Virus record (IMG/VR): IMGVR_UViG_3300034073_003340
Coordinates: 62,001-126,000 of that record
Direction: 5' to 3' (one strand)
Length of the DNA: 64,000 bases
Shown: one piece after another, positions 11,868-64,000 of the stretch
Layout of the letters: the number at the start of each line of letters is the position of its first letter
Numbering within the stretch: the first letter of the stretch is position 1
The notes under the pieces: generated by a model
The model's database searches: none
What the model was told of the DNA's origin: nothing
The model's input: only the letters and a program-made list of their open reading frames with translations
Position numbers and translations under genes: made by a program

Positions 11868-14800
11868 TGGCCAATAATACTCGTAATAACCCGTTTGCTT
11901 TCACACCAATTGTCTTGGATCAAGACTCACATGAAAAGCGTCGAGTTATCAGACAACTTCCTGCCGTTCACCAGACGGAGACTCTACAGAAGTTCTTTGG
12001 ATCTTCTGTTGATCATTTGTTTGATCCCGGCAAGGGTAAGCCTATTAACGGCTATGTGGGTCAAAAGCCACTATGGTATGAACCAGATCAGGACTATTAC
12101 CTTGAAGAATCAACTGACGATAGAAACTTCTATCAGCTTGAAGCTAGTATGGTCAGTAAGAATTCAGAAGGCGAACTAACTGATCTTCTTCCCTACCCTG
12201 ATCTAATCAATCAGTTGCGCTTCCAAGGTGCTCTGGTGAACAATCACCATAGATTGTTCTCACAGGATTTTTATACCTGGTGTCCTCCTATTGATTTGGA
12301 CAAAATTGTCAACTTCCGACAGTATGTATGGCTTCCCTCAGATGGACCTGAGATTGTCAATAATGCCATCATTATCAAGGGACCTACTGTATCATATAAC
12401 AGCTCTGGAAATGATACGACATTTGACCTTCCGGGATATGACAATACCGGAAATGCTTCTCTTCAGGCTTTCTATGACATATCAGTTCTAACTTCAGATC
12501 TAATTGTTGCTGAAGTCGATGGTGAGCCAAGACCATTTTCCTATGTGTCAGGCCAGACCACTATTACTTTTGACCAGAGGCCACCAGCTGACGCATCGGT
12601 ATCAATTTCCGTATATAGTGATCTAGAAAATAATGCGATTGGGTTACCAAATGCTGATCCAGCTGCGTTTGGTGGAATTTCTCTGAGCTCTGGTATGCGA
12701 GTAATTGTCCTCAATGACAAGAATAGCGACTTCAGCCCAGACGACGTTTTCATTGTTGAAGGCGTTGGTCAGAGCATTTTTCTATTGAACGAAAAGGACT
12801 ATGTGGGAGACTCGCTGTCTGATTACATGGTTATGGCTCGTGGTGCCACAAATCGTAACGAGTGGTCAACTGGAAATCGCTGGTTCCATGTCTCAACTCT
12901 GCCGTCAAATCTAGATCCTGACTTTGTTCTGAGACAGAGAGCAAAACGTCCAATCATTGAATTTAATCGTGATCTAGAACTACACAACTATGGTCTGCGT
13001 CGTCGACTTGATGTGGATCTGGTTATAGAGGATATTGAAGACTTAAACGGATATCTAAACCAGAATCCACAGAATGCGGTATTCTCTGGAATATCAGTAT
13101 CCTGCGTGGCCAACAGCCAGATCAATGTAACCGCTATCAATCCGGCTACCAACGCGCCATATGGTAACGTTGATAGCATTAGAGTTCTTGTACGCAATAC
13201 CGTCAATCCGCTACTGAATAATAATATCTTGGTTCTGGTAAACCAAGGTAATGTTCTAAAGCTGATTTTGGAAACTGATGGTGAGAATCCGTCTGGAGAA
13301 CCAGTGGATGGGGAAGTAGTAAAGATCCTCCTAGGTTTCTATGCAGGTAAAAATCTAAACTGGAATGGAGTGAATTGGGTTCTAAGTCAGAATAAAGGGG
13401 ATGTGAACCAGTATCCTCTATTTGAGCTGTATGATTTGAATGGTAATAATCTGGCAGATCCTGTTCTTTATCCTAACTCCACCTTTGCTGGCTCTAGGCT
13501 ATTTTCTTACAAAGAGGATCGATCAGGCCTACGTCCTTCCGATCCAATTCTCGATATGCCTTTGGTGTATGATAACAAGGGTCAAATCCTGTTTGAAAAC
13601 TATCTCAGCACTGAGAGATATCAGTATGTGATCGCTGGGAGATTTCTTGATATTGATGGATTTTATTTCCATAAGATTGGCAATATTGATCCTTCTCTGG
13701 AGACTTTGAGTAACGATTGGCATAAAGCGCCACAAAAAACTCGCCAGTTTATGGTCGATCGCTATGTTAGCGATGGTAGAACCAAATTGTTCCAGATCAG
13801 CCAAGACGCTTTGGAAATTTCAGTTTCCAGAGGTAGGGTCAATACTGATGGTTCTTTTGAACAAACCGCACTGGTCGAAGATAGCGACTTCATTCGTGTT
13901 GATAGACAGATCTTCATTCTCAACATTCAGTTGGGTGACATAATTGAGATCAGAACTTTCAATCCTGCGAATCCACCGGCTGATGCTAAGGGATTTTATG
14001 AGGTTCCTTTGAATCTCCAAGCTAACCCGGATAATGCCGAAGTCTCGGACATGACTAAAGGTGATTTCTATGATCACTTCTCAGAAATCATGAAGAGGCA
14101 GGATGGATTCCAAGGTGCTGAATATTCAACCAACAACTATCGAGACACTGCTAAGCTTCCTAATTTGGGAACCAACATAATCCAACACTCTGCCGGTTTG
14201 TTGAAGACAATGTTGCTGGCAAGCCAGAGTCAGCTGGACATCACTTCAGCAATTCGCTTTGTTGAATCAGAATATGCTCGCTTCAAGGACAAGTTCCAAC
14301 AGCGAATTCTATCATATGTTGCCAATAATCGTATTGGTAATGCCGCCACTTATGACACTTGGATCAATACCGCTCTTACTGAACTGAACAAAGGTAAAAC
14401 CAAGAGTTTTCCATTCTATCTAAGCGGTATGGCGAAGAACGGGACCAATCAGCTTCCTACCTTTATTCCTCCTACCCCAAGTTTTCTCGGGGTATATCCC
14501 CTATACGCTCCTGAGATCATCTCTCAGGAGGTCGACGGTGCTGACGATGTCTGGTTCGTAAGAGGCCATGATGGTTCTCTTACACAGGGACAGAACGAAA
14601 CAGTAGCCAGGGTTCTACTTGCTTTGGAGCAAAGAATCTTTGATAGTGTCCCTGCTGCGATTCGAGAGCGCGAACGTCCAGTTTGCGATTACCAAGCAGC
14701 TTACGGCGATCAGTATCGTCGCAACGACTATTCATATGAAGAATACCTTCAGATCCTTCGTCCGTCCTTTGAACGCTGGGTGGTAGCGTTTAGGCTTGAT

Positions 14801-17800
14801 CCAAGAGAAAATGATCTTGGACAAGATACTTTGGAGTCAAAGATCAACCTAAAAGCCAATCCATGGACCTGGAACTGGTCTTCTACCAGAACCGCTGCCG
14901 GTGAAAAGGTTCCAGGTAATTGGCGTGGTATCTATGAAAAGTTCTTTGGTACTCAACGACCTGACTTGACTCCTTGGGAGTCACTGGGTTTTTCGATCAA
15001 GCCTGCTTGGTGGGATGATCGATATGGTCCTGCTCCATACACTAGCGAAAATTTGGTTCTTTGGGAAGATCTAGAGCGTGGATATATCCACGACGGTGAT
15101 AGAAAAGGTATCAATACCGAATGGGCACGCCCTGGTCTTCGTGACTATATGCCGGTTGATGCTCGAGGTCGATTGCGCCATCCTGGTCCTCGTGAACTCA
15201 TTGCTTTGAACGAGGTCACCGTTGATACTGACCTAGCTTATGCGACTGATCCTTTGATGTGGGAAGACACCAGAGACGATGGTGTGTTGGGATGTGGTAT
15301 CTGTACTTCCGTTCCTTTGGTCCAAGAACGCAAAGCCGATTGGGAATGGGGAGATATTGGCCCAGTTGAGCAGACTTGGAGAAGAACCAGTAACTTCGCT
15401 TTTGCGGCATCTACTGCGGGCTATTTGATGAAGCCAGCAAGTTTTGTTGAAATGGGTTGGAACACTCAAGACATGAGCCTGTTTTTCAAAGGCACCATGG
15501 GTGAACAGTATCTTAATCAAGATACCAAAGGTCGCCCTGCCCACCGTGCTTTACAGGTCCATGGTGAGGTCCTAGAGGACTTTAGTCTGGTAACCAAGGT
15601 TGGTATCCAGCAATGGATAAGTGATTTTCTCACCAGCAGAAACACCTCAATTAATAGTAATCTTGCTGAAAGAGTAAGAGGTCTTGGAACTCAGCTAAGC
15701 TATAAGATTGCCGGTTTCACTGACTCGACTACTCTTGGTGTGGTAAGTGATGCGTTTGGTAGAGTTCCTAGTGAGGACGTTACCGTAGCTCTGTTTAGAA
15801 GTCCTAGCGTTCGTGAAGAAACCTATAGCGGTGTTGCCATTGAATATACTGGTCGTGGTTATGAAGTCTTTGGATACGATGTATTGAATCCTTACTTTTC
15901 CACACTGCCCCCTGCTATAAACGGTGGTAAGATCAGTGTTGGTGATGGTCTAGGTAGCGTATCTATTCCATCATGGCGTCCAACTACCTATTTCAGTGTT
16001 GGTATCACGGTTAGATATCAGGACAACTTTTATCGAGCAGTAAGAACTCATACTTCAGCTACATTTTTTGAAGATGAATTTTGGACGCAAGTGGCTCGTC
16101 CACAGTTTGCTGACGGCTCTGCTTTGATTTGGTATACCGATGGTGAAATTGAACCAATAGTAGAAAAGGTTTCCTATGGAACCGTCTTCAAAGACCCGCA
16201 GGAAGTTGCCAATTTCTTGAACGGATATGAACGTTATTTGGAATCCAAGGGTTGGATTTTTGAGAACGTTGGCGAGGATGAGTTGGAGGTTCGAGATTGG
16301 AAATCTGCTCTAAGAAGCTTTATTACATGGAGTGGTGCCGATGCTAGAGCAGCTGGTGATTTTATCAGCTTGAGTCCAGCAAGTCGCATGGTCCAATTCT
16401 CTACGGATCAAGGAACTATCCAACCAATCGAGCAGATCGTAAATGGTCTGTATGCCATTGTGGATCAGAATGGTCAACCAATAGACAACCAGTTGACTAG
16501 GGTTGTTCGTAATGACGGCAATGTGAGTATCACATGCGACAACTCGACGTCTGGTATATTCGGTCTTCGTCTCTATATAAGCGAGATGGAGCATGTTCTA
16601 GTATTCAATAATACAACTATCTTTGGTGACACCATTTATAGTCCTTTGTTGAATATCAAGCAGCCAAGACTACGTCTACAAGGCTTCAAGACAGTTGCTT
16701 GGAAGGGTAGAATTGACGCTCCTGGTTTCATCATTACTGGTGACACTTTGACACCAAACTTTGAACGATCAGCAGATGATTTCCGTAGATTCTTTGACAT
16801 TGAATCTATGGAAAACAAGAAGCTACAGGATCGCGCCCGCGCAAACTTTGGCTATGAGGAAAAGGAATATCTGAATAATCTACTACTGACTCCAACCAAT
16901 CAGTTTGAGTTCTATCAGGGTATGATCCAACAAAAGGGTTCTCCCACCTCTATGCGTCGTTTGCTGCGCTCAAACTTCATTCGTCACAATAAGGGTCTAC
17001 GTCTTTTTGAAGAATGGGCATTTCGTGTAGGTGATTATGGAGGTCAAGAGGTCGCACCACAGCTTGACATCTTGATCCGTCAAAGTGAATTCAAGCACAA
17101 CCCTCAGTTGATTCAGTTCAGTAACAGCCAGTCTCCAAATTCGTTTGGTATAATTGATGTCATTGATGAAAACGTAGGACAGGATAATCGAACTTTAGAT
17201 GGTCGTTGGCAATGGCGCCCAGATATGCAGAGCATCAATTGGCCACTAGCTGATTTTGGACAAGGCGACACTCCTCTACCAACTGCTGGCTACGTGAATC
17301 TAAGCGAAGTTCGCTTCACTGTTGCTACTGACTCTGATTTTGAAAACTTCTTTGGTGATCAAGAAGCCACTGAGGATCCAATTGAAAATGGTGATCGCGT
17401 ATGGGTCTACGGTATTGGTAACGGAGACCCAAGCACCGCCTGGATGACCTATAGATTCACTGACACCAACTATGACATGGTGAACTCCTTTGTTCCTTCC
17501 CATGTGGACCAGGGTGTTATCATTCAAGTTCAAAATGATCTACAAGGTATTGTTGATATCAATACTGACCCCACTCAGACACCTGTGTTTGTGGCTCAGA
17601 ATCTAGTTTCCAATGAAACCGATGATAATGGTATCGTGGTTTCTGGGGAACGTCTGATACTAAAAGATATAGTGGGATCAGATATCAATCCATTGGCGAC
17701 CTATATTCCCAAGATTTCTAACCGTGCTAGTGTGACACTGGATTCCACTGTTGGATCTGAAACCTTTATCATGAGTTTCTATCCGGAAGCCAAGCAGATC

Positions 17801-20800
17801 ATCCGCAAGGTTCGAGTAACGATTGAAGAAGCCTTTACAGAAGGTTCCACTTTACAAATTGGCCATACTGGAAATCCTGGCTTATTTGTCAACGTCAGAG
17901 AAGAAGCCGATCGCGGTATTTTCCCAACTAACTTTGACCAAGAGCAGGTTTTGATTCAAACTCCGGCTCTATCCTATATGCCACCAAATGTGACCACCGC
18001 CGATGTAAATCTAGTAAGGGTAGGTCGTGTAGGAAACTTCTGTGCTCAGACAATAGTTGAGTGGGAGTGGGTGAGAGCAAGTGACAACCAGTCATTCACT
18101 GGGCAGGTGACTTACATGCGCCCAAGTGATTATGATTCCTCTAGAGATCAAACTGAAGCTTATCTACAGACTATTAGAGTTCCAGTATTGGCGGAGGATG
18201 TTGTAGGAGGTAGCGAAGGAACTCTCACCATCAGAACCAATGGAGTTCAAACTGATACTCAGGTATTAAGATTTGAGCGATCCACTAGTGCTCGTTTGAA
18301 CTTTGTGGATCTTACTCGAACTGGCTCTTATGAATTTGATAGTGTAAACTTCTCAGTTTTCCCTTGGGACTCAAACCTCGCCGGTGAAAATCGTGATATG
18401 ATTGCTACTCTATTCAACACTGGTTCAAATGGATCAGTTAAAATTGAAGTAGATTATCACTACATGAAGGGATTTGAGTTAACAGAATCTATCAACGGTT
18501 CAGTTGTTCCGGTTATTGCTTCTTCTGAAGGAGGAACTGCTAACCTCTTCACATGGGTCAAAACCCGTTATCCTACGCTTTCAGGCATGCCTGAAAGCCT
18601 GTTTGAGGTTGGTGATTTAATTGAAGTAGATTCAGCGCATGATAACCCTGGATATTGGGCGGTTTATTCTCGTTCAACTTCAGGTTGGGATCAAATCAGA
18701 CGACAAAACCGCAAGGTGGATAGTAGCCTGATTACCAATGCGGCGATCTTCAACAACAAGGAAAACCAACTCAAGCTAGTTCTTCAACTCTATGATCCTT
18801 ACAAGGGCTTCATCCCAGGAGTAGCTGATCGTGAGTTGACTTATAAGACTTTCAACGACCCGGCGACCTATAATGATGGTCGACTAATATGGGGCAAGGA
18901 ACAGGTAGGCCAACTATGGTGGGATCTGAGTGCCGTCAGATATCTCGATTATGAAATCTATGATAGATGGAATGGTAGTGACCATGAAGGTGTTACCTAT
19001 CGCTGGAAGAACTGGGGTAAGGTTGCTCCTAACTCCAGCGTTGATATCTACCAGTGGGTTAGAAGTCCAGTAGCACCCAATGGATGGGCAGATTTTGTTG
19101 AAAGTAAGGCAAATCTAAAGATTGATAATAAGCCGTCTGGCACCGTTTCCGAGGATTCCAAGTTTATAACTGACATGGAATGGAATGAAGAAATTCAAGC
19201 GGACGAAACTGTTTACTATTTCTGGGTTAAGAACCCCACGGTAGTGCCAACTTTGGCCTCTAGGAAACTTTCAGCTCAGCAGGTAAGCAACATTCTTACT
19301 AACCCTACTTCAAACGATATTCCCTTCTTTGCGGTCATTGACACCAACAAATGTATTGTTGGTGGTATCAAGCAGTTCTTGAATGAGACTGATACAGTTC
19401 TAAAAATCAAGTGGCTCAAGGAAGCTGACGTCCATAACAACCACCATAAACAGTGGATGCTACTGCGAGAGCAAGATGAGCGTAATACCATAAATGATAC
19501 GCTTTGGAACAAAATGCGAGATAGCATTGTGGGATGGGACGCAACTGAGAAGTCAGTTCCTGACGAAAAGCTTCCAAAGAATCAACAAATTGGAGCACTG
19601 GTCCGTCCAAGACAAAGTTGGTATCCGGCAGATATTACGGATCTAGGTCAGAGACCTAGCCGCGCCGCGCGCGCCGCGTTTGTTGATGCGTTCAATGATA
19701 TAATGAGCAAACAGCCATTTATCGACCAGTGGTTTGGTTGGGAAGAGGTATTTGATAATGGCGAAGCATTACCTTCGGCTGACAGATATGTAACGACCGC
19801 TCTTGATCTTATCGACTTGAGAAACCTTCTACCTGCTACCCGTAATATGGTCCAGGTCGGGGAGTGTGTTCTTATTGAAAATACAATGGAAGTTGCCGGT
19901 TTCTGGACTCTGTGGAGACTTGCTGAAATCAACGGCCAAAGAACATTTGTCATTGAAGACTTCCAGAAATGGAGAATGCAGGAAGGTGAGCTCTGGAATC
20001 TTGCTAACTGGTATGCGGAGGGTTGGAGTGCCAGTAACTTCCCTAACTATAGATTTGCCACTTATGCTGATCGTGACGCCGCCGGTAACCTAGACGTTAC
20101 CTTGCTCAAGGGAACCTTAGTCCAGGTCGACGTCCAGAGTCCTACTGATGACCGATGGTCATGGGATGTTTATACATCTACGTCTAAGTATCAGGTAGCT
20201 AAGGCTCGTTCTACGATGCGTCTAACTGAAGCGTTTTATGATAAGAGTAGAGTTGAATTTGGACCAGTTCAGGTAAATGGTCTTCTCAACGCTAGCGACG
20301 ATAATCGCATTACTCCTGAAAGAATTCAGGAGTTGGCAGATTTGATCAACTTCCGCGACGGTTCAAGAGAAATAGAATTCATCTTGAATACTATGAGGAC
20401 CAAGCTGTTTGATTCCCTACAAAAGAATAATCTATTCTTTGCTATGGTTAAGAGCGCATTCAAACAGAGTATCAATATCGACTGGGCATTCAAGACTTCA
20501 TTCTTGTATCTTGGTGGCTATTCAGAAAATCTAAGACAAAGCCCAGTGGCGTTCAAAGATCAGATTGATAACGTTATTGCGTATCTGGAAGAGGTGAAAC
20601 CTTACCACGTTAAGATTCGCGAATATGTTCGTCGATTGAGCTATGGACCAGATTTGGCCGCTTTGGCTATGACTGATTTTGACAAGCCGGTTTACCCGTC
20701 AGGGACGTCAAATAGAGTTCTGGATGTAAACAACACGGTTGATCGCTCTATTATGGAAATCAACCGTCCTTGGAGAGACTGGTTTGAAAACTATCTCAAT

Positions 20801-22267
20801 GAAAATCGAGACCTAAACAATTGGGACGAGAACTGGAATGGTGTTCGTCGAATGAAATTAAAGGTCAAGTTTGATCGTATCTCTTGTGGAACAATTAGAG
20901 GTTGGGATACTTCTCCGTGGGATCCTGCTTTGCTTGTTTACAGTCAGCTTGGTAGCTCAACTCAAAGTTTGAGTCAGCTAAGCTCGCTATACAGAACTGG
21001 TTCAACATCTGGATATAACTTTTATCGAGATCAATCAGTGGAAACTATAGAAGAACGAAATCTACTCGTCCGTAGAAATATTGTTACTCCTAGCCGTCCA
21101 GGAACCATCGTAACGGTGCTACAGACAAATGAAAACTTCATGTGGTCTGGTAGCGAGTGGATCAAATTTGAATCGCTAGGCTGGGATCAGGATCCTGACA
21201 TGGGAACCGCTACTAGGATTGAGTCTTCTTATAGACCAGAGCCTGGTATGAAGAGACGTGATGATCCTGGTCTGATTGCCGGATGTGAGTTTGATGGTAC
21301 CGTGATCTCTGATAGTTTTCAGGCCGACGCTTGGGATATCTTCGAATGGGACTCCACTGGATATAGTCAGGGCTTGCGTGAACGAGCAGGGGTTGATCAA
21401 GAAAGTGTTGATGGTAACACGACACCTCAAGATGAGGCAGACCCTGCTTATATCGGCACTACTGGAAATGAATTCAGTCAACCAGCGGTGAATGGAGGTA
21501 GACCACATGAGCTAGTTCAAATCAGAGGTGTTGAAAGCATTGTGGTAAATGTTTCCAGAAATAACGGTCCATATCAAAAGTCATTTATGAACCACAAAGG
21601 CGATTGGCAAGATATGTTGATTTCTGGTTCATCTCTGTCGTTTGTTTCATGGGACCAAACAAACCACAAATTGGTTGTCAGCGTTGCCTCTTGGACTGAA
21701 GACGCACAGGGCTTTACTCCGCTTCATGACCCTCAGAACCCTTCTACGGGCTTTATAAGGGACGTTATGGCGAGCAGAGCCTATCGCTCTACAAGTAATA
21801 TCGATATGACCTCAGCAGGAACAAAAACCTTTAAGTTGAGGAATTTGGGAGAAGTAGAAGGTATTCCTGCTGGTTTGCGCGGTGACGAAGTCAAAGTTGC
21901 TGTCATTAATCCAAAGAATCCTTCCATTAGAGCTATCGGAACCATTTCAAATTCCAAAGGAAACGAAATCAATTGGGATGGAAATGTTGAGATAACGTTT
22001 GATTCTGATGGATTCGTGGATTTAGGTTCTGGTAAGAGCTGGAATATCATCCCGGTTGATATGTTCAACACCCCAGGCATTGTCTGGGTTGGTGATGCTA
22101 GATTCACCTATAATAGTTTGACAATCAACGGCAACATGGTTGAACTCAATGAGGTCTTCCTATCTGGCAACACCTTGGCTCCCCTTAATATAGGCGAAGA
22201 TAGTATAAGCCTAGTCAAGACTAGCCCGGTTTTTGATGGTTCAAAACAACGTCAAATGGCCCGATAA
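11867..22267 (+). CDS. Giant virion structural protein (3466 aa; baseplate wedge/gp7-like position)
   Basis: Follows the gp6-like gene; VKPYHVKIRE motif and WD-rich C-terminus; internal CBM5/12-like module. Confidence 0.7.
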   Translation: MANNTRNNPFAFTPIVLDQDSHEKRRVIRQLPAVHQTETLQKFFGSSVDHLFDPGKGKPINGYVGQKPLWYEPDQDYYLEESTDDRNFYQLEASMVSKNSEGELTDLLPYPDLINQLRFQGALVNNHHRLFSQDFYTWCPPIDLDKIVNFRQYVWLPSDGPEIVNNAIIIKGPTVSYNSSGNDTTFDLPGYDNTGNASLQAFYDISVLTSDLIVAEVDGEPRPFSYVSGQTTITFDQRPPADASVSISVYSDLENNAIGLPNADPAAFGGISLSSGMRVIVLNDKNSDFSPDDVFIVEGVGQSIFLLNEKDYVGDSLSDYMVMARGATNRNEWSTGNRWFHVSTLPSNLDPDFVLRQRAKRPIIEFNRDLELHNYGLRRRLDVDLVIEDIEDLNGYLNQNPQNAVFSGISVSCVANSQINVTAINPATNAPYGNVDSIRVLVRNTVNPLLNNNILVLVNQGNVLKLILETDGENPSGEPVDGEVVKILLGFYAGKNLNWNGVNWVLSQNKGDVNQYPLFELYDLNGNNLADPVLYPNSTFAGSRLFSYKEDRSGLRPSDPILDMPLVYDNKGQILFENYLSTERYQYVIAGRFLDIDGFYFHKIGNIDPSLETLSNDWHKAPQKTRQFMVDRYVSDGRTKLFQISQDALEISVSRGRVNTDGSFEQTALVEDSDFIRVDRQIFILNIQLGDIIEIRTFNPANPPADAKGFYEVPLNLQANPDNAEVSDMTKGDFYDHFSEIMKRQDGFQGAEYSTNNYRDTAKLPNLGTNIIQHSAGLLKTMLLASQSQLDITSAIRFVESEYARFKDKFQQRILSYVANNRIGNAATYDTWINTALTELNKGKTKSFPFYLSGMAKNGTNQLPTFIPPTPSFLGVYPLYAPEIISQEVDGADDVWFVRGHDGSLTQGQNETVARVLLALEQRIFDSVPAAIRERERPVCDYQAAYGDQYRRNDYSYEEYLQILRPSFERWVVAFRLDPRENDLGQDTLESKINLKANPWTWNWSSTRTAAGEKVPGNWRGIYEKFFGTQRPDLTPWESLGFSIKPAWWDDRYGPAPYTSENLVLWEDLERGYIHDGDRKGINTEWARPGLRDYMPVDARGRLRHPGPRELIALNEVTVDTDLAYATDPLMWEDTRDDGVLGCGICTSVPLVQERKADWEWGDIGPVEQTWRRTSNFAFAASTAGYLMKPASFVEMGWNTQDMSLFFKGTMGEQYLNQDTKGRPAHRALQVHGEVLEDFSLVTKVGIQQWISDFLTSRNTSINSNLAERVRGLGTQLSYKIAGFTDSTTLGVVSDAFGRVPSEDVTVALFRSPSVREETYSGVAIEYTGRGYEVFGYDVLNPYFSTLPPAINGGKISVGDGLGSVSIPSWRPTTYFSVGITVRYQDNFYRAVRTHTSATFFEDEFWTQVARPQFADGSALIWYTDGEIEPIVEKVSYGTVFKDPQEVANFLNGYERYLESKGWIFENVGEDELEVRDWKSALRSFITWSGADARAAGDFISLSPASRMVQFSTDQGTIQPIEQIVNGLYAIVDQNGQPIDNQLTRVVRNDGNVSITCDNSTSGIFGLRLYISEMEHVLVFNNTTIFGDTIYSPLLNIKQPRLRLQGFKTVAWKGRIDAPGFIITGDTLTPNFERSADDFRRFFDIESMENKKLQDRARANFGYEEKEYLNNLLLTPTNQFEFYQGMIQQKGSPTSMRRLLRSNFIRHNKGLRLFEEWAFRVGDYGGQEVAPQLDILIRQSEFKHNPQLIQFSNSQSPNSFGIIDVIDENVGQDNRTLDGRWQWRPDMQSINWPLADFGQGDTPLPTAGYVNLSEVRFTVATDSDFENFFGDQEATEDPIENGDRVWVYGIGNGDPSTAWMTYRFTDTNYDMVNSFVPSHVDQGVIIQVQNDLQGIVDINTDPTQTPVFVAQNLVSNETDDNGIVVSGERLILKDIVGSDINPLATYIPKISNRASVTLDSTVGSETFIMSFYPEAKQIIRKVRVTIEEAFTEGSTLQIGHTGNPGLFVNVREEADRGIFPTNFDQEQVLIQTPALSYMPPNVTTADVNLVRVGRVGNFCAQTIVEWEWVRASDNQSFTGQVTYMRPSDYDSSRDQTEAYLQTIRVPVLAEDVVGGSEGTLTIRTNGVQTDTQVLRFERSTSARLNFVDLTRTGSYEFDSVNFSVFPWDSNLAGENRDMIATLFNTGSNGSVKIEVDYHYMKGFELTESINGSVVPVIASSEGGTANLFTWVKTRYPTLSGMPESLFEVGDLIEVDSAHDNPGYWAVYSRSTSGWDQIRRQNRKVDSSLITNAAIFNNKENQLKLVLQLYDPYKGFIPGVADRELTYKTFNDPATYNDGRLIWGKEQVGQLWWDLSAVRYLDYEIYDRWNGSDHEGVTYRWKNWGKVAPNSSVDIYQWVRSPVAPNGWADFVESKANLKIDNKPSGTVSEDSKFITDMEWNEEIQADETVYYFWVKNPTVVPTLASRKLSAQQVSNILTNPTSNDIPFFAVIDTNKCIVGGIKQFLNETDTVLKIKWLKEADVHNNHHKQWMLLREQDERNTINDTLWNKMRDSIVGWDATEKSVPDEKLPKNQQIGALVRPRQSWYPADITDLGQRPSRAARAAFVDAFNDIMSKQPFIDQWFGWEEVFDNGEALPSADRYVTTALDLIDLRNLLPATRNMVQVGECVLIENTMEVAGFWTLWRLAEINGQRTFVIEDFQKWRMQEGELWNLANWYAEGWSASNFPNYRFATYADRDAAGNLDVTLLKGTLVQVDVQSPTDDRWSWDVYTSTSKYQVAKARSTMRLTEAFYDKSRVEFGPVQVNGLLNASDDNRITPERIQELADLINFRDGSREIEFILNTMRTKLFDSLQKNNLFFAMVKSAFKQSINIDWAFKTSFLYLGGYSENLRQSPVAFKDQIDNVIAYLEEVKPYHVKIREYVRRLSYGPDLAALAMTDFDKPVYPSGTSNRVLDVNNTVDRSIMEINRPWRDWFENYLNENRDLNNWDENWNGVRRMKLKVKFDRISCGTIRGWDTSPWDPALLVYSQLGSSTQSLSQLSSLYRTGSTSGYNFYRDQSVETIEERNLLVRRNIVTPSRPGTIVTVLQTNENFMWSGSEWIKFESLGWDQDPDMGTATRIESSYRPEPGMKRRDDPGLIAGCEFDGTVISDSFQADAWDIFEWDSTGYSQGLRERAGVDQESVDGNTTPQDEADPAYIGTTGNEFSQPAVNGGRPHELVQIRGVESIVVNVSRNNGPYQKSFMNHKGDWQDMLISGSSLSFVSWDQTNHKLVVSVASWTEDAQGFTPLHDPQNPSTGFIRDVMASRAYRSTSNIDMTSAGTKTFKLRNLGEVEGIPAGLRGDEVKVAVINPKNPSIRAIGTISNSKGNEINWDGNVEITFDSDGFVDLGSGKSWNIIPVDMFNTPGIVWVGDARFTYNSLTINGNMVELNEVFLSGNTLAPLNIGEDSISLVKTSPVFDGSKQRQMAR

Positions 22268-31169: not shown

Positions 31170-32438
31170 TCAATGATATTTAAAGTTTTTAATATTCAAA
31201 TTACTATCCTGGAATAGAATATCGGCAGATGTCAGTCTGCCTCCCTTTCCGCATCCAGTATCCATGAAATAAGCTTCGCCGCCTTTGGCTCCTTTGACTT
31301 TCAGAGGCTGAGTAGTGGATCTAATGTCATGTCCTACCATGACTCGCTTGTCGGCAGGTATCCTATTGACCCAATCATAAACCCTAGTTGGATATCCATC
31401 TGGTCTAGGTTCGGAAGTATTATCGACTTCGCCAAAGAGTGCCATGGTTTCAAATTTGCCAACAAGCCGAGGGGAATCTATATCAAACATCTCTGGTTCG
31501 GCTGCTCCATGAGTAAACAAGGTGTTACCAATAACCCAATGATGTCTTGAAAACCCTAAGAGGGCTTTATAGCGAATCTCAAACTTGCGCCGCGCGTCTG
31601 GTCCCAATTCCTCAATGGCTTTGGTAGTGACCTTGTTGCCATCACTCAACCTGACTTTGACGTCGTTATGCTTGATCTGTTCCAACCATCGTTCAATCTT
31701 CCTCTCATGGTTGCCAATCAAACAAAGTCCTCGCCCTCGAGATACCACATCATAGACATGATCCACGCATTCTATGGGATTAGGTCCATAGTCTATAATA
31801 TCACCCAGGAAGATACAAAATAGGTTTCTTTGTGTTGCCCATTCAGTTGCTGCCTTTAATGGTTCCAACATGGCGTGAACATCACCAATGACCATAAGGC
31901 CCCTAAAGCCTAGTTTTTCGATATTTTCTTTGAGTAACTTGTTTGATAGTCTGGGAACTACTTCAAAGTTTTCTTTCCGAGTGTCAATTACATTGGCAAC
32001 GCCATCACCTCTCAGAATATCTCTTTCATTGTTGCGGAAGATATGTTCCTGTTTGGTAATAGCCGCTATAGCGTTCGGCCTCCAGCTATTCTTTGAATCT
32101 ACAAGTTTGGAATCCAAACTTCGATTACATACAATATAGAAAATAGGAACTCCGATCTTCAAAGCAATGTCTGATAACCCAGTCCTGTCCTTTTTTCTCA
32201 AGTTAGTAGCATCAACCACTACTCGTTCACCAAGTTCTAGTTTGAGTTGAGCTCTTCGGTAAACTTCCCTAAAAACTATGTCATTTATATTGGTTTTCTG
32301 AACGTCGCCACACAGCTCATAACGGATAGCTTCACTACTCATGATTTCATAATCAGCAAACATTTTGGACAAGGTCGTCTTGCCACTGTTAGCTGGACCA
32401 ACGAAGATCACCAGACTATGGAGTGGTATTCTTTTCAT
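31170..32438 (-). CDS. Polynucleotide kinase-phosphatase (Pnkp-like: P-loop kinase + metallophosphoesterase)
   Basis: GPANSGKT and VVDATN kinase motifs; GDVH, GDIIDYG, GNHE, HG, GH phosphoesterase motifs; start ATG 32438. Confidence 0.88.
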   Translation of the reverse strand: MKRIPLHSLVIFVGPANSGKTTLSKMFADYEIMSSEAIRYELCGDVQKTNINDIVFREVYRRAQLKLELGERVVVDATNLRKKDRTGLSDIALKIGVPIFYIVCNRSLDSKLVDSKNSWRPNAIAAITKQEHIFRNNERDILRGDGVANVIDTRKENFEVVPRLSNKLLKENIEKLGFRGLMVIGDVHAMLEPLKAATEWATQRNLFCIFLGDIIDYGPNPIECVDHVYDVVSRGRGLCLIGNHERKIERWLEQIKHNDVKVRLSDGNKVTTKAIEELGPDARRKFEIRYKALLGFSRHHWVIGNTLFTHGAAEPEMFDIDSPRLVGKFETMALFGEVDNTSEPRPDGYPTRVYDWVNRIPADKRVMVGHDIRSTTQPLKVKGAKGGEAYFMDTGCGKGGRLTSADILFQDSNLNIKNFKYH

Positions 32439-32512
32439 ATCACCAATATAAATGAAAATTGACATCAAAGTCAATTTTGTTACATAATAGAGCATACAGG
32501 TGAGGATTCTAT

Positions 32513-35920: not shown

Positions 35921-36739
35921 TCAATCAGCTTCTGGTGGTGTCTTGTTGATATCACCGCGCTGGGCCTGATACCAGTTGTAGACGCAGCGGTCGAGACCAA
36001 TCGCAATCTCGAGGACTAACGCGTCTTTTTCCACAATATCTTTCTTGCCCTGGAAGGTCAGCTTCTGAGGGAAATCAGTCCGAAGGCTGATCGAGCAGAC
36101 TTCCATCCACTTGTCGCCATTCCAAATTTCCACATCCATGGTTCGCTTGCTATAAGCGGGCAGTCGATCACTTTCCACCAGCCGGGTGGGTAGGTGTACC
36201 ATTGCGCCGATCATCTGCTGAACCTTGGGCAACATGGCTTCCTGATAATCCATACCAGAATCAGCAGTGAAGATACACTGGAACTCCTGCTGGTAGAACT
36301 CTTTTAGCCGCATATGCTTGGTGGGCTGGATAATTTCTCGACGAAAGCTTTTACCGGCTTGCCATACGACCAAGGGAGGGAAAACCTTGGGATGAACGTT
36401 ATTCAGTAGATGTTGCGCATAGGCATAGCTACCTGGCGTGGTCTCGGGACGAAGCGCGAGGATGCGTGGTGGAGGGCTAGCCTCACTATCGACCCACTTT
36501 TGATCTTCCTCACTCAATCGAGGATCTTGCTCCCAAATGTCGTTGGCAGTGTAATTGACGTTGAGGAGATCACGCGGGTTGAGCAGTGGAGCCTCGATCT
36601 GGAAAAACTTCCAGCGATCATTGAGGGCCTGAAGTTCTACCTGAATACGAGCGGCAAAGAAATCTCGCATAGTCTCACGAAGCTTGATCTCTTCCTCGTT
36701 CCAAAACACAAGGCCATTGATATTGAAGATGTTCTGCAT
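35921..36739 (-). CDS. Glycyl-tRNA synthetase (alpha2-type)-like catalytic core without anticodon-binding domain
   Basis: LRPETT, QAGKSFRRE..RLKEFYQQEFQ (motif 2), AYSKRTMDVE, EVCSISLRTDF, VLEIAIGLDR (motif 3); ends about 20 aa after motif 3. Confidence 0.85.
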   Translation of the reverse strand: MQNIFNINGLVFWNEEEIKLRETMRDFFAARIQVELQALNDRWKFFQIEAPLLNPRDLLNVNYTANDIWEQDPRLSEEDQKWVDSEASPPPRILALRPETTPGSYAYAQHLLNNVHPKVFPPLVVWQAGKSFRREIIQPTKHMRLKEFYQQEFQCIFTADSGMDYQEAMLPKVQQMIGAMVHLPTRLVESDRLPAYSKRTMDVEIWNGDKWMEVCSISLRTDFPQKLTFQGKKDIVEKDALVLEIAIGLDRCVYNWYQAQRGDINKTPPEAD

Positions 36740-37113: not shown

Positions 37114-37131
37114 GATTTACCTCAAATTCGG

Positions 37132-37204
37132 CCTCCCCGCCGAGATTCGAACTCGGGTCTCGCGATTTTAGAGATCGCTGCTCTACCAACTGAGCTACGG
37201 GAAG
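37132..37204 (-). tRNA. Amber suppressor tRNA, anticodon CUA
   Basis: Canonical cloverleaf: acceptor CTTCCCG/CGGGGAG, D-arm GCTC-AGTTGGTA-GAGC, anticodon arm GCGAT-CT[CTA]AA-ATCGC (anticodon 37171-37169), T-arm CCGAG-TTCGAAT-CTCGG; G73; followed by CCG, not CCA. Confidence 0.93.
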
Positions 37205-37700: not shown

Positions 37701-38294
37701 TCAGTCGAGTTCGCTATACTTGCTGGCCATGCGGTCCGACATGCGCTGAAGTCCACCGGCAATGGTCTGGTAGACCGAAGCAAACACTCGCTGGAGGAAG
37801 TCACCAACGAAAGTGCCGATGAACGAAAAGGGCCAAAACACCATCCAAGTGGTGATACGACCCTTGTTATAGCGGACCATTCGGTTTACATTGATGTCAA
37901 GTGCCTTGACATCATAGATGCTATTGAAAGCATCACGTACCGCAGCATCAGCTGGCATTTCCTTGAGACCCCGGCTTTCCAGAAAGCGCCAGCGAAGTGT
38001 TTCATAGCGATCGAAAAGCTTGGGCAGAAAGAATAGACGCCACTTGATGAATGCCCAAATGGCAGCAATGCCCACATATGCCAAGGCACCGTATACCACA
38101 TAGAGTGGATTATCCTGGATAAAATCCAGAACAGGTGCGTTGGTAAATGCCACAATAGCGGCAACCGTGATCAAAAGAGTGAGGGTGGCCGATCCGACCT
38201 TTTCCGAGTCGATCTGAGCCGCGAGGATCAGAGTAACAGTGCCGACGATAATCCAAAAGAGGACACCGCCGAACGTGATGAGTTCTGCAATCAT
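37701..38294 (-). CDS. Hypothetical membrane protein
   Basis: Three N-terminal TM segments; [11 protein letters not shown]; ATGA overlap with cysS. Confidence 0.7.
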
Positions 38295-39640
38295 GTTCGT
38301 CTCCATTCGGTGCCGTGAACGCCATCGGCCAGCGTGATCCCCATTTCACTTAACTGCTGACGGATCCTATCAGCTTCTTCATAATCTTTGGCTTTTCGTG
38401 CTTCTTGACGAGCAACCACTAGAGCATCAACCGCTTCCTTGTCAACACCTAGAGTTCTCCATTGATGTGGAGTATGGTTTAACAGTCCAAGAAGTTTGCC
38501 TGATTTGATCAACTTAGCCTTAAGTGGGGCCTTTTCCCTACTAGAATCAAGCTCGCTAGCCAAAGCGTGTAGAGCGGTAATAGCCGCAGGTGTATTGAGA
38601 TCCTGAAAAAGCTTAGAGGTGAATTCCCCGGTCAGGCTAGTATCTTCAGCCCAATTAATGTCGTCCCATCGATAAAGGATGTCATAAACCCCTGACAAGG
38701 ATTTATGAGCCTGCTCCAAAGCCTCCCATGAAAAGTCCATGGGTGAACGGTAATGGGTTCGGAGAAAATAGTATCGAACGGTCTCGGCCGGATACTTCTC
38801 GAATAGATCACTTAGAAGAATCACATTGCCGCGACTCTTGGACATCTTTTCACCGTTTACCGTCAAAAGCCCATTATGGACCCAATAACGAGAAAGTGGT
38901 TTGTCCATAGCACAATGACTTTGCGCGCATTCTGCTTCATGATGAGGGAAACGAAGATCAGCACCGCCCCCATGTATATCAATTGTCTGTTCCTGGAACT
39001 CTTTGGCAATCATCGCCGAGCATTCAATATGCCAGCCGGGTCTGCCGTCACCCCAAGGACTGCTCCACCGTGGCTCTCCAGACTTAGCAGGCTTCCAAAG
39101 GACAAAATCTCTGGGATCCTTTTTCTTTGGATCAACTACCACTCGACCACCGGATCTAAGATCATTATGATTGGCTAGACCTGGATGTGGATTACTGGGC
39201 ACGTGAAAAAAGACTTCACCCTTAGAAACATAGGCATGCTTGCTAATGATCAATCGCTTGATCAAAGTTCGCATTGCTTGAATGGATTCAGTGGCTTTGG
39301 GCTCGACCGTTGGTGGTAGACAATTCAATGCCTTGAGGTCGTTGTGATAGGAAGCAATAGCCGGATCAGTGATTTGACTGATGTCTACCGTCTGCTGCGA
39401 TGCTGCTTCAATGATTTTGTCATCAATGTCAGTTATGTTACGGGCATAGCGGACATGATCTTCGCCATAGATATATCGCAGAACTCGGAATAGCTGATCG
39501 AAAACCAGTGCGGGTCTCGCGTTACCAATATGAGCAGGACCATAGACCGTAGGTCCGCAAACATACATCATGACCTGCCTAGGGTCCCCAGGCGTAAAGG
39601 TCTCAGTCTGTCGAGATTGGCTGTTATAAATTTCCAACAT
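38291..39640 (-). CDS. cysS: Cysteinyl-tRNA synthetase
   Basis: MYVCGPTVY, HIGN, DFVLWK, GRPGWHIECSAM, DIHGGG.DL.FPHHE, KMSKS. Confidence 0.97.
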   Translation of the reverse strand: MLEIYNSQSRQTETFTPGDPRQVMMYVCGPTVYGPAHIGNARPALVFDQLFRVLRYIYGEDHVRYARNITDIDDKIIEAASQQTVDISQITDPAIASYHNDLKALNCLPPTVEPKATESIQAMRTLIKRLIISKHAYVSKGEVFFHVPSNPHPGLANHNDLRSGGRVVVDPKKKDPRDFVLWKPAKSGEPRWSSPWGDGRPGWHIECSAMIAKEFQEQTIDIHGGGADLRFPHHEAECAQSHCAMDKPLSRYWVHNGLLTVNGEKMSKSRGNVILLSDLFEKYPAETVRYYFLRTHYRSPMDFSWEALEQAHKSLSGVYDILYRWDDINWAEDTSLTGEFTSKLFQDLNTPAAITALHALASELDSSREKAPLKAKLIKSGKLLGLLNHTPHQWRTLGVDKEAVDALVVARQEARKAKDYEEADRIRQQLSEMGITLADGVHGTEWRRT

Positions 39641-41875: not shown

Positions 41876-43078
41876 TCACTCACACAGATTAGTATCCCTG
41901 AAATCACTCCAGGAAGTTCCACCCCACAGGTGACGCATTGAATTCACCTTGGTCTGGCTACCAAGCTGCGAACCCACATACTTGATCAACAGTGAATAGA
42001 CCCCTTCTTCGCCATCTGCCAATCGGTCCCAAGTCGAAAACTTAAAGCCCTGGAGCCCGTTCTTTTCGCTGGTAACCTTTTCAGCAAACTTCTTCTTGCT
42101 ACCGTTGAAGTTGTCGAAATCCGCCTGGACTTCCCAGTAGAGTTCGCTTGCTAGCTTCTTCAGTCCTACGAAAATGCTCTTGGCAAAATCGTCAGCAGCC
42201 TGAACTAGGTCCTCGGGCAGAAAAGGCTTGGCGTCATCCAGCTTTTCGTCCACGATCAGACGAATAACATCCTTTTCATGGTTGAGATGTTCCAGCGTCT
42301 TATGGAGCAGCGAATACCATTCTCCCTTCAGCTTGAGCATGGTGCCGTCTGCCCAACGGAAAACATCACCTTCCTCGCCCTCAACTCCTCGGATCTCGGC
42401 AATGGTTTCGTCGTCAATGCCAGTGATCTCGCCGGAAAAAGAACAACAAGGAATGCCATAGGAGGCGGCTTCCTCCTTGAGCAAAGGAGCATCCATATAC
42501 TCACCGGTTTCGTTGTCGCGAATAGCAGTCAAAACCAGCTGAGTCACGGGATAATCGATAACAATGCGCTGAATGCGAGAGCACCATTCAAAGATCGGAG
42601 TCTTGCCCTGGCTCATCCAATACTTACAGAACTCGTGATACTCAACACGATCCTTGGCCCACACGTCCACCGGCGCAGCCACGCCAGTAAGACCCATCTT
42701 GGTGCAGAAGCGCACTTCGCCCTTGATCAGCAGAGGAGTGATCATCGAACCATCAAGCTTCTTGAATCGACGATACGGCTTTGACCAATCGACTGATCCC
42801 GGCATAGTCTCAGGACGTTCTCCGAGGTTGAAGAACTTGTGATACTTGCGAGAAATCACCTTGCCAGTCGCAGTATCAAAGGTGATGCCGCGACATTCGC
42901 GCAACAGTGCCGTCCGTCGATCAGTTACTGGCGGGAAGGTATCTTCGAAATTGACGAGATAGTTGATCACGGTGTATCCGTGCTCTTCGTCCACCTTGAC
43001 CACAAATTCTTCGCGGCCCTCAATGGCTTCAAGAATTTCCGACAAATGCGTAATCTTGGGAAATTGATAGGAAGTCAT
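41876..43078 (-). CDS. RNA ligase, T4 Rnl1-like
   Basis: RECRGITF, KFFNLGE, KLDGSMI (motif I), FEW, EG.V, KLKGEWY. Confidence 0.92.
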   Translation of the reverse strand: MTSYQFPKITHLSEILEAIEGREEFVVKVDEEHGYTVINYLVNFEDTFPPVTDRRTALLRECRGITFDTATGKVISRKYHKFFNLGERPETMPGSVDWSKPYRRFKKLDGSMITPLLIKGEVRFCTKMGLTGVAAPVDVWAKDRVEYHEFCKYWMSQGKTPIFEWCSRIQRIVIDYPVTQLVLTAIRDNETGEYMDAPLLKEEAASYGIPCCSFSGEITGIDDETIAEIRGVEGEEGDVFRWADGTMLKLKGEWYSLLHKTLEHLNHEKDVIRLIVDEKLDDAKPFLPEDLVQAADDFAKSIFVGLKKLASELYWEVQADFDNFNGSKKKFAEKVTSEKNGLQGFKFSTWDRLADGEEGVYSLLIKYVGSQLGSQTKVNSMRHLWGGTSWSDFRDTNLCE

Positions 43079-43203
43079 TGATTTCACCTTTGCGTTTGGT
43101 TTTAAACTATTGCTGACAAGAAATTTCCTGCTCAGCGTCAATGTTGGATAATGACACTGAACAGGAAATTGTCAACCAGACTTTGGTGTCTAGACACCAA
43201 AAA

Positions 43204-62126: not shown

Positions 62127-63646
62127 TCACCAACGCTCTTGGATCAGCATTCCTGAAAAGAATCGCTGCCAGATGCGTTCACTAATAAAGGGCATAATAG
62201 GATGTATCATGGGCAGAATCATTCGCAAACCTTCCAAGAGAGTCAAGAGAGCTTCGCGATCCCCCGCAAAGATTCGTTCCTTGATATCTTCCATGTAACC
62301 GCTACAGAAGTCTTCGAACAAGATCCTATGACATTCTAAGGCAGCTTTGCTGTATTGGTAGTCCTTGTAGAGCTCTTTGAGATGCGTCTGTCGCGCTCTC
62401 AGAAGCTCTATGAGCGCGATGTCGCGTTCATGCTTACTCGGATGCTGCGAAGGTTGCCCAATACGCTCCAAATGAATCTGAGCGAACTTAGCAGCATTCC
62501 AAAGCTTGGTAGACATTCTTTTGCCAGCTTGGAACTTTTCATCCCATATTTTCATGTCCAGGCCCGGCTGGGTAGCTTCTGCCAACGCAAATCGCATGGC
62601 ATCACAACCATACTGGTCAATGATCGTCAGAGGATCAATCCCGTTGCCAAGACTCTTGGACATCTTGCGACCCTGCTTATCCCGCATGATACCATGGAGG
62701 TAGATGGTCTTGAATGGCATCTCACCCGTGAGCAAGAGTCCCATCATCAACATTCTGGCACACCAGAAGAACAAGATATCGTCGGCAGTCTCAATCATTT
62801 CAGCGGGGTAGAATTTCCGCAGGTCTGGTGTGTCATTGGGCCAACCAAGAGTTGCGAAGGGCCAAAGAGCAGAGGAAAACCAAGTGTCTAGACAGCCTGC
62901 TTCGCGTTGGAACCCTTTGGGTCCCTCTTGGCCAATTTGGATCTCTTCTCCCTGCCTCCAGATCGGCAACTTATGACCCCAGCGGATCTGCCTACTAATA
63001 CACCATGGTTCAATATTATTGAGAAAGTGGCGAAGAGTCTTGGCTTCGCTGGCTGGGCGAATTTCCAACTCGTCCTCATCCATTCTATCCAACAACTGCT
63101 TGGCTAGGTCGCGCATGTCTAGATACCATTGATCACCTTGCCTGTAGAGCATTCCTGCCCTATGGCACTTCTCAAGGGCCGTTGTGACCGCTCTTGAATA
63201 GTCCTCATCTAGAGTAAAGGTATAGCGGGACCAATCACATGAAGCGCCTGTTCTACGGATCTGTTGATTGATCTCTCCGCTAAGATTGGCTTTGTATGTT
63301 TCCGCGAAGTCATCAAAGGCAGGACCCATGGGATCCAATCCCTGATCCAACATAAGCTGGTCGAGTTTGTCCTGCGTTGCTAGTCCTGCGTGATCAGTGC
63401 CGGGAAGCCACAAAGCGGCCTTTCCCTGGGAGCGGGCAAAGCGAATAGAGATGTCTTGGAGCGTTGTGAACAACGCATGACCCATATGAAGTTTGCCCGT
63501 GATATTGGGCGGGGGCATGGGGATGAAATAGGGATCATCGCCCTTGGGTCTAAAGGCCCCGACAGTTTCCCACGCGCTGTAGAGCTCTTGCTCTTCAGTG
63601 TTGTGGTCGAAACGCTTGGTTAGTTGCTGACGTCCAACGTGGTCAT
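62127..63646 (-). CDS. valS: Minimal valyl-tRNA synthetase (no CP1 editing domain); start ATG out of frame with the body (frameshift or pseudogene)
   Basis: PPPNITG.LHMGHA, PGTDHAGLATQ, WCISRQ..WGH, LDTWFSS, DILFFW, KMSKS; conserved N-terminus continues upstream of the track ATG 63518. Confidence 0.85.
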
Positions 63647-63798
63647 TTTGTTATCCTCCAAATAATCGTACGATATTTATACAACGGAGGGGCTCAGTTC
63701 GCAAGAGCAAACCAAGCCCCCTCCTAGAAAGGCTAAATATTACAAACAAAGGCTCAGCTGGGGCCCTTGGAACAGAAACCCCAGCTTCGCTTCAGAAT

Positions 63799-63927
63799 TT
63801 ACCTAGTCTCAACGACAGTGGTGCGTGGACGCTTTTTGGCTTCCTTTAATGGAATGAATTTACCAGTTCCAGCATCTCTCGCACGTTTTGTCTTATTAGG
63901 ATTAGTAGACTTTATTTTCTTTGCCAT
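63799..63927 (-). CDS. Small basic protein (42 aa)
   Basis: Manual translation MAKKIKSTNPNKTKRARDAGTGKFIPLKEAKKRPRTTVVETR; RD..TG.F..A..RP.TTVVE motif; AAGG SD. Confidence 0.65.
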   Translation of the reverse strand: MAKKIKSTNPNKTKRARDAGTGKFIPLKEAKKRPRTTVVETR

Positions 63928-64000
63928 AATATTGGCCTTTCTCTAACCATACTTTCCGAAATGGGAAGTTTCAATGGTTAGCTCGTTTGGGGAGTGTTCT

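Follow-up and report, generated by a model that had tools for sequence, protein, structure and literature searches.

A valine-poor phage valyl-tRNA synthetase probably made by −1 recoding from a short conserved leader

A synthetase gene whose start codon lies in another frame

How is a gene expressed when the ribosome-binding site and start codon in front of it open a different reading frame? This question is raised by a valyl-tRNA synthetase (ValRS) gene, valS, on the minus strand of a 64,000-nucleotide (nt) stretch of viral DNA, hereafter the window, which covers bases 62001-126000 of the IMG/VR record IMGVR_UViG_3300034073_003340. The record is 435,856 bp long with direct terminal repeats, and the window codes for baseplate, tail-fibre and other tailed-phage proteins. 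The sequencing runs that contain this stretch are subsurface, soil and freshwater metagenomes. The whole phage genome carries 59 tRNA genes, and the ValRS of the window is its sole ValRS. Our analysis of the sequence indicates that this enzyme is probably made by recoding, through a programmed −1 shift. That the gene family relies on a real and conserved recoding event, or on some other non-standard mode of expression, we consider very probable.

The features that define the problem are as follows.

63674..63681, minus strand: TATAAATA, a promoter-like motif read from the sequence, resembling the T4 late-promoter consensus
63655..63659, minus strand: Shine-Dalgarno (SD) sequence GGAGG, with an 8-nt spacer to the leader ATG at 63646-63644
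63651..63653, minus strand: TAA closing the ValRS frame upstream, within the SD-ATG spacer
63620..63646, minus strand: leader open reading frame (ORF) in the 0 frame, MTTLDVSN (ATG ACC ACG TTG GAC GTC AGC AAC TAA)
63620..63623, minus strand: leader stop TAA (63622-63620) lying over the first conserved ValRS Leu codon, CTA (63623-63621)

ATG 63646 opens nine codons only, the stop TAA at 63622-63620 included. The ValRS frame is −1 relative to the ATG frame and runs over 507 codons, from just after TAA 63653-63651 to position 62127. The conserved ValRS N-terminus (LTKRFDHNTEEQELYSAWETVGAFRP..YFIPMPPPN) sits in the frame that is entered by a −1 shift. We found no ATG, GTG or TTG in the ValRS frame upstream of ATG 63518, which encodes the M of MPPPN, and when all table 11 start codons were allowed the earliest one was ATC 63524. 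The residues encoded upstream of 63518 (LTKRFDH..YSAWE..GAF.P..YFIP) form a normal ValRS N-terminus, in which the Leu at 63623-63621 aligns with residue 3 of the Thermus thermophilus enzyme, and initiation at 63518 would remove the first strand of the Rossmann fold. There was no X XXY YYZ slippery heptamer between ATG 63646 and TAA 63620. The first-pass annotation, made from the letters alone, had reported the promoter-like site, the SD, the ATG opening only an eight-residue peptide, the N-terminus stranded in a −1 frame that lacks the usual starts after its upstream TAA, and the want of a classic heptamer; all of this proved exact on the minus strand. Motifs like TATAAATA also occur 5′ of the SD in several relatives, and a sigma-70 promoter scan gave no match at this site.

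The gene is intact and encodes a shortened ValRS

We then considered what the gene encodes. Its landmarks on the minus strand are listed here.

62127..63632, minus strand: coding sequence of ValRS in the −1 frame; it begins with CGT (Arg), which would be decoded directly after the proposed shift, and ends with the stop
63477..63488, minus strand: HIGH motif (HMGH), invariant in the family alignment
62652..62666, minus strand: KMSKS motif, conserved in the family alignment

Pfam recognized the class Ia core (PF00133, 6.7e-98) and the anticodon-binding domain (PF08264, 4e-15) in the ORF. The best solved relative was the T. thermophilus ValRS (1GAX, 2.8e-106), with an alignment covering residues 3-169 and 334-694 of its 862. 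The window protein is without the CP1 editing domain (about residues 170-333 of 1GAX) and without the C-terminal coiled coil (the last 170 residues). Judged by these alignments, it is a shortened ValRS variant of about 500 amino acids (aa), compared with 860-950 for full-length ValRSs.

The leader was checked at the level of assembled contigs, not raw reads, in three samples from two studies. The contig of the source sample was identical to the window at a depth of 47. In a second sample, two contigs (63406-63660 and 63631-64000) cross the leader and differ by substitutions, with no indel, and so does a contig from an independent freshwater study that spans it (63500-63650). A strain variant in two other samples, A to G on the plus strand at window position 63562, changes Val-30 of the ValRS to Ala and so takes away one of its few remaining valines. 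Pairwise dN/dS among family members was 0.07-0.18, with synonymous sites near saturation (pS 0.50-0.76). These values indicate that the valS ORF is a functional gene under strong purifying selection.

The same leader precedes related genes

We compared 22 gene 5′ ends, namely the window and 21 further members of the short-ValRS family at 31-75% aa identity. The relatives came from IMG/VR contigs of 9-578 kb (nine), from a 1.86-Mb metagenome contig (one), from Logan, ENA, JGI and NCBI assemblies (ten) and from a cultured jumbo phage, Stenotrophomonas phage RAS14 (OP752703.1). A continuous ORF from the leader ATG, the outcome that the first-pass annotation had set against its own reading, was seen neither in the contigs nor in the relatives; the discontinuity is present in all 22 genes. 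Each of them has an SD-like sequence 5-9 nt 5′ of an ATG that lies in the +1 frame relative to ValRS, and a homologous leader ORF of 6-10 codons follows. The order is also the same throughout: ATG, 0 or 2 codons, then Leu, Trp or Cys, then Asp, Glu, Asn or Gln, then Val, followed by 0-4 codons and a stop. The peptides include MTTLDVSN, MTTLEV, MTLLDVI, MWDVRS and MLDVSN, as well as MSPLNVI, MSPLNV (RAS14), MSSLEVRL, MNAWDVTP and MERCQVI. The first-pass annotation had pointed to two Thr codons and one Val codon in the leader. All three are present in the window, and in the comparison only the Val codon was kept; the Thr codons are not conserved.

In nine of the 22 genes, the window included, the ValRS frame contains no ATG, GTG or TTG before M-PPPN. 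Among other members, L191 has TTG at the conserved Leu, and L002 and L007 have CTG there, both weak starts. RAS14 is a cultured phage of 320 kb whose valS lies at OP752703.1 85987-87336 (L210:370-1738), and its leader MSPLNV ends in a TGA that overlaps the annotated ValRS ATG.

Among the 117 best family matches in a collection of 5.8 billion proteins, 90 were called from M-PPPN or later, that is, they are N-terminally truncated. These short calls fit a missing in-frame start, which the DNA confirms in only nine of the 22 genes examined. Scans of genome contigs and metagenome contigs returned, among the matches listed, almost only canonical long ValRSs. No close family member was found in phage and plasmid collections, where the nearest were RAS14 and CM1, at 31% identity. 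The same leader was carried by three very large contigs, L111 (Ga0308158_10000001, 1.86 Mb), L197 (JBAJGS010024343.1, 1.27 Mb) and L198 (Ga0480284_0000001, 1.01 Mb). To our knowledge, these contigs of 1.0-1.9 Mb exceed any described phage genome.

A 10-nt block around the leader Val codon is constrained

Per-column analysis of the leaders singled out a short block, within which we place the proposed shift site.

63629..63638, minus strand: conserved 10-nt block GTTGGACGTC, from per-column analysis of 18 sequences, extended to 22
63629..63635, minus strand: proposed −1 shift site G GAC GTC, inferred from a pattern, X XAN GTN, present in 22 of 22 genes

The block has the consensus G-T-K-X-X-A-M-G-T-N, and positions 1, 2, 6, 8 and 9 are invariant in the 22 sequences. 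Positions 4 and 5 are always alike (GG in 19, AA in L111 and RAS14, CC in L199), with the result that the leader Val codon always follows an XAN codon that itself has the same base X on its 5′ side (G GAC, G GAA, A AAC or C CAA). By a simple shuffle, the rare X variants would coincide by chance about once in 420. An X XAN in front of the Val codon is what the tRNA on that XAN codon would need to keep its first-position pairing after slipping back by one base.

We asked what each frame would require of these positions. Read in the leader frame, positions 8-10 form a Val codon in every gene, the last base of which may be A, C or T, and positions 5-7 specify one of four similar residues (Asp, Glu, Asn or Gln). 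Read in the ValRS frame, positions 7-9 give Arg (CGT) or Ser (AGT) and positions 4-6 give Gly (GGA), Lys (AAA) or Pro (CCA), in both cases with the third base fixed. Moreover, a G stands at position 1 throughout, although the codon that it closes varies (ATG, ACG, CTG, GCG, CCG, TCG, AGG). This pattern indicates that the constraint on the block goes beyond the coding needs of either frame.

A second regularity concerns the end of the leader. Its stop overlaps the conserved Leu codon in 20 of the 22 genes, RAS14 and L201 being the two others. In 16 of the 21 metagenomic genes this Leu is CTA, a triplet that makes up 6% of their Leu codons and that four genes use nowhere else in the ORF.

The motif is specific to ValRS, because its 9-nt form occurred 57 times elsewhere in the phage genome against about 53 expected and the two matches adjacent to an ATG were internal to ordinary ORFs. 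Rfam gave no match to the leader beyond a chance alpha_tmRNA hit (12.5 bits, E = 0.13), and a single-sequence fold of the window leader region had a z of −1.5.

The enzyme is nearly free of valine

The window ValRS contains 3 Val in 507 residues, whereas 32 would be expected from the phage ORF mean of 6.4% (binomial p = 2e-11). Across all residues and all phage ORFs of at least 200 aa, only one depletion is more extreme. The deficit extends to the family: Val accounts for 51 of the about 9,700 codons of the 21 metagenomic genes, 118 short family proteins have a median of 3 Val, with 16 of them lacking it altogether, and the ValRS of RAS14 has 0 Val in 449 residues. In comparison, 77 bacterial ValRSs had a mean of 6.8% Val and a minimum of 4.7%. 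Codon choice is also uneven. The Val codons within the 21 ORFs are GTC (35), GTG (10) and GTT (6), with no GTA, and the leader Val is GTA in 17 of 21, while GTA accounts for 20% of Val codons genome-wide. A valine-purged enzyme that stands behind a leader whose sole invariant sense codon is Val points to control by Val-tRNA(Val).

Other synthetases provided related observations. A distant short ValRS at L022:1453-3000 (IMGVR_UViG_3300049793_000366, 508 kb; 29% identity) has 0 Val in 516 residues and an ordinary in-frame ATG, so that a valine-free ValRS can exist without a frameshift leader. The same phage as the window encodes a threonyl-tRNA synthetase (ThrRS) core (G000:C1:305850-307052, minus strand, L207) of 401 aa, without the N-terminal domains and with a normal ATG start, which has 5 Thr compared with 23 expected; cognate depletion is thus not confined to ValRS. 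A complete cysteinyl-tRNA synthetase (CysRS) with an ordinary in-frame ATG lies at window 38291-39640 on the minus strand (PF01406, 6e-110), and we set it aside as a case of cognate depletion, uninformative because Cys residues bind zinc. Two further ORFs lack a residue altogether, one of 304 aa without Ile (G000:C1:155631-156542, plus strand) and one of 245 aa without Asp (149963-150697, plus strand). Pfam matched none of the phage ORFs that lack Ile, lack Asp or have a single Lys, so that they add no further synthetase cases.

A −1 slip at a hungry Val codon

The mechanism that we favour, and which we regard as evenly poised between right and wrong, is a −1 frameshift at a hungry Val codon, by which ValRS would be made when Val-tRNA is scarce. 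Ribosomes would start at the SD-proximal ATG 63646 and translate the short 0-frame leader, whose single Val codon, GTC (63631-63629), would act in the A site as a sensor of Val-tRNA(Val) supply. With plentiful Val-tRNA(Val), Val would be inserted, termination would follow two codons on at the TAA, and no ValRS would be made. With scarce Val-tRNA(Val), the A site would stay empty and the P-site tRNA(Asp) would slip one base back, from GAC to GGA. Arg CGT would be decoded next, and the −1 frame would then be read through the Val-poor ValRS ORF, with a predicted N-terminus M-T-T-L-D-R-Q-Q-L-T-K. The net effect would be a negative feedback with a logic like that of prfB (RF2), acting through a hungry sense codon. 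Leftward −1 shifting at hungry codons through P-site slippage is an established laboratory phenomenon (PMC5009743).

The first-pass annotation had suggested a recoding event possibly sensing charged tRNA. Comparative support for this suggestion turned out to be strong, with an invariant leader Val, a co-varying X XAN before it and a near-valine-free enzyme; the frame layout, the conservation, the constraints and the depletion are observed, while we infer the ribosomal −1 shift itself, its site and its control by Val-tRNA.

Several observations weigh against this mechanism. The energetics of the slip are weak. Re-pairing at X XAN would leave two of three positions paired, or three with a G-U pair for GAA. 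In the window, tRNA(Asp) on GGA would have one Watson-Crick pair, one G-U pair and one mismatch, which makes G GAC a weak slip site, and the C CAA variant entails a C-U mismatch in the middle position. No stimulatory element emerged either: RNAalifold on 18 homologous 5′ regions found 0 conserved pairs downstream, and the distance from the SD to the shift site varies from about 14 to 20 nt. The mechanism does not account for three features: block positions 1-2 are invariably GT, which places a Val codon of the ValRS frame 7 nt 5′ of the leader Val; CTA is strongly preferred at the Leu carrying the leader stop (TAA or TAG); and WIN-type leaders are nearly identical from the SD to the Val codon, although synonymous sites are saturated. 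Two Val codons are still found downstream in the window ValRS ORF. At least some members could begin ValRS without a frameshift, because seven of the 22 genes have GTG at the Val of 'VGR' (block position 1) and because in RAS14 and L201 the leader stop overlaps an ATG of the ValRS frame. The 22 sequences are kin by descent, so that the counts overstate independence. Finally, a search for RNA sequencing runs holding the locus found none.

Among the tRNA genes of the phage we noticed an odd tRNA(Asp) prediction (GUC; G000:C1:310819-310892, minus strand), with a 4-bp anticodon stem and U37; tRNA(Asp) is the tRNA proposed to slip in the window.

A broader view of the favoured mechanism, which we hold tentatively and as slightly short of an even chance, is that of a self-contained 'emergency' module in a family of huge-phage ValRS genes. 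The enzyme, purged of valine, could be translated without Val-tRNA, and a leader of 18-33 nt would switch it on, through a non-canonical −1 frameshift, only when ribosomes starve at one Val codon. Such a module may counter host defences or a shut-off that depletes charged tRNA(Val). Elsewhere in the window, two minus-strand ORFs resemble a polynucleotide kinase/phosphatase (31170-32495) and a T4 Rnl1-like RNA ligase (41876-43141). T4 uses a kinase/phosphatase and ligase pair to repair tRNA cut by host anticodon nucleases. The presence of this pair is compatible with a counter-defence role of the translation genes.

Other ways to reach the ValRS frame

One alternative, which we judge unlikely, places the −1 shift at the leader stop. 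The whole leader, its Val included, would be translated, and once the stop had reached the A site, the overlapping Y-U-R triplet (C-UAA read as CUA) would be decoded by a Leu-tRNA to give ...V-S-N-L-T-K. Both the position of the stop over the first conserved Leu and the preference for CTA described above fit this idea, the phage has two tRNAs with anticodon UAG, and there is precedent for both 'shifty stops' and non-cognate decoding at −1 (PMC5009743). However, the codon before the stop varies (AAC, GTC, ATC, AGC, CGC, CCC, GCC, CTC, ATT) and is mostly unable to re-pair at −1, RAS14 and L201 have their stop off the Leu codon, and neither the invariant Val codon nor the co-variation of X XAN is explained. 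A shift at this point would also tie the synthesis of a valine-free enzyme to Val-tRNA. Just as improbable in our view is a coupled upstream ORF without any frameshift, in which ribosomes would re-initiate in the ValRS frame at a codon overlapping the stop, or at the GTK where canonical ValRSs have Met. The ATGA overlap of RAS14 and L201, the TTG of L191, the CTG of L002 and L007 and the GTG at block position 1 in seven genes are what such coupling would use. Moreover, the −1-frame sequence V-G-R-K-x-L-T-K resembles canonical M-G-K-N-L-A-K N-termini, and the L of LTK is the residue that aligns with residue 3 of the T. thermophilus enzyme. Yet the window and eight other genes are without any ATG, GTG or TTG, which by ordinary rules makes such a start impossible in them, and the window is without a table 11 start before ATC 63524. 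In addition, CTA, TTA and GTT each pair with the initiator tRNA at one or two positions only, the invariant 0-frame Val codon and X XAN are again unexplained, and the feedback would be positive, not negative. One of the two UAG tRNAs is perhaps worth describing: it is a 77-nt tRNA (G000:C1:323805-323881, minus strand) that reads CUA, the codon carrying the leader stop, and its short variable arm is unlike that of bacterial tRNA(Leu).

A retrograde hop, which seems to us a good deal less probable still, would have the peptidyl-tRNA(Val) leave the 0-frame GTN and re-pair 7 nt upstream on the −1-frame GTK, giving ...L-D-V-G-R-Q-Q-L-T-K. It is the sole model that uses both invariant GT pairs (positions 1-2 and 8-9), the codon pairs fit a single tRNA(Val), with GTC found only with GTT and GTG only with GTA, and backward realignment has been shown in a cassette derived from T4 gene 60 (PMC5009743). 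On the other hand, we know of no natural example, no conserved structure or fixed SD distance would drive it, the codon after Val varies, and the co-variation of X XAN is unexplained; a hop would need charged Val-tRNA and would add Val to a protein that avoids it. Transcriptional slippage or RNA editing could restore the frame by adding one nucleotide to the mRNA between the ATG and the Leu codon. We rate this as very improbable because there is no homopolymer run: those of the leader are of at most 2 bases (the spacer has A4), and about 7-9 bases in a row are required for slippage of the known kind (PMC5009743). The other reading put forward by the first-pass annotation was a 1-nt deletion, from pseudogene decay or an assembly error, to which an error of sequencing may be added; one missing base would indeed look alike in a single sequence. 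This reading is refuted to the point of a negligible chance, because the contigs are free of indels, the same discontinuity recurs in 22 of 22 genes, the cultured phage included, dN/dS is 0.07-0.18, as expected under purifying selection, and the catalytic motifs are intact.

Other candidates were tried and rejected. Under another genetic code, reading the leader TAA as sense merely prolongs the wrong frame, and the phage suppressor tRNAs read TAG, not TAA. Forward hops fare no better: a ribosome passing over the stop from one AAC to the next would end up in a wrong frame, and a jump from GAC to the F-D-H GAC would cost the protein its conserved LTKRF, besides using codons that are unmatched in relatives. 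Mimicry of the tRNA(Val) anticodon by GGAC fails with the seven members that have GGAA or CCAA. An initiator-like tRNA that reads GUN or CUA was rejected too, since ordinary G1-C72 ends were found in the three tRNA(Val) genes and in the tRNA(UAG) genes.

Comparison with known systems

Coming back to the proposed slip at the hungry Val codon, we looked for systems that it resembles. As in prfB, a short 5′ ORF runs to an in-frame stop while the main product lies in another frame, and scarcity of the gene's own output would raise shifting. Unlike in prfB, the shift would be −1 (or +2) rather than +1, the sensor would be a Val sense codon instead of UGA and RF2, and the window leader lacks both a CUU U slip codon and an internal SD 3 nt upstream. 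The −1 shifting at hungry codons in laboratory constructs (PMC5009743) shares the empty A site and the slip of the P-site tRNA to a near-cognate triplet, and needs no downstream structure; the present case would be natural, conserved and regulatory, whereas hungry-codon shifts are treated mainly as error in that account (PMC5009743). We would name as closest analogue the RF2 +1 frameshift in logic and laboratory hungry-codon −1 slippage in mechanics.

Canonical −1 shifting (dnaX, insertion sequence elements, phage tail chaperones) likewise fuses two overlapping frames. In contrast to these systems, there is no heptamer and no conserved hairpin or pseudoknot, the site lies 3-5 codons from the start across the family, and the 0-frame product has just 6-10 residues. 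Leader attenuation and T-boxes (pheST, ilv, his) also sense charged tRNA in a short 5′ leader of a synthetase gene, but the output here would be a change of frame instead of transcription termination, and the leader has one cognate codon, no terminator/antiterminator pair and no T-box. The cognate bias of amino-acid biosynthetic enzymes (PMC4209129) offers a parallel for a protein poor in the amino acid whose supply it restores; the difference is that the present case is a phage aminoacyl-tRNA synthetase, with an extreme of 0-0.7% Val. The layout of a coupled upstream ORF is found in RAS14 and L201, with their ATG, and not in the window, where C-TAA lies over CTA and no start precedes 63524. 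Our literature search returned no account of this leader, of valine-free ValRS or other valine-free synthetases, or of a natural hungry-codon case in an aminoacyl-tRNA synthetase.

Other features of the phage

Two tRNAs with anticodon CUA, amber suppressors that ARAGORN labels 'Pyl', lie at window 37130-37204 (minus strand) and, as a second copy, at G000 293258-293333. They suggest that TAG may be sense in part of the phage genes. Next to the suppressor tRNA, at window 35921-36739 (minus strand), is a 272-aa ORF similar to class II aminoacyl-tRNA synthetases (PF00587, 4e-9) and poor in Gly and Ser, which could be a dedicated charging enzyme. Finally, a 3466-aa ORF poor in Lys and Ala (window 11867-22267, plus strand) stands directly 3′ of the baseplate wedge gene.

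Significance

If the favoured mechanism is true, valS would be the first case in nature of an aminoacyl-tRNA synthetase gene that controls its own expression by programmed frameshifting, and hungry-codon slippage would for the first time have a natural role in regulation. Confirmation would establish a new class of autoregulatory recoding, namely a −1 shift that senses aminoacyl-tRNA at a sense codon without heptamer or RNA structure, and would add a new form of synthetase gene control beside T-boxes, attenuators and operator mimicry. Because the cultured phage RAS14 has the same leader, the idea is directly testable. There is also a practical consequence for annotation: in public databases, about three quarters of the proteins of this family lack 45-55 residues in their annotated form, since gene-calling programs find no start. 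More generally, the ValRS with 0-0.7% Val and the Thr-poor ThrRS indicate that phage synthetases can be shaped for synthesis during failure of the very charging that they restore, and such cognate-poor synthetases bear on why huge phages carry translation genes.

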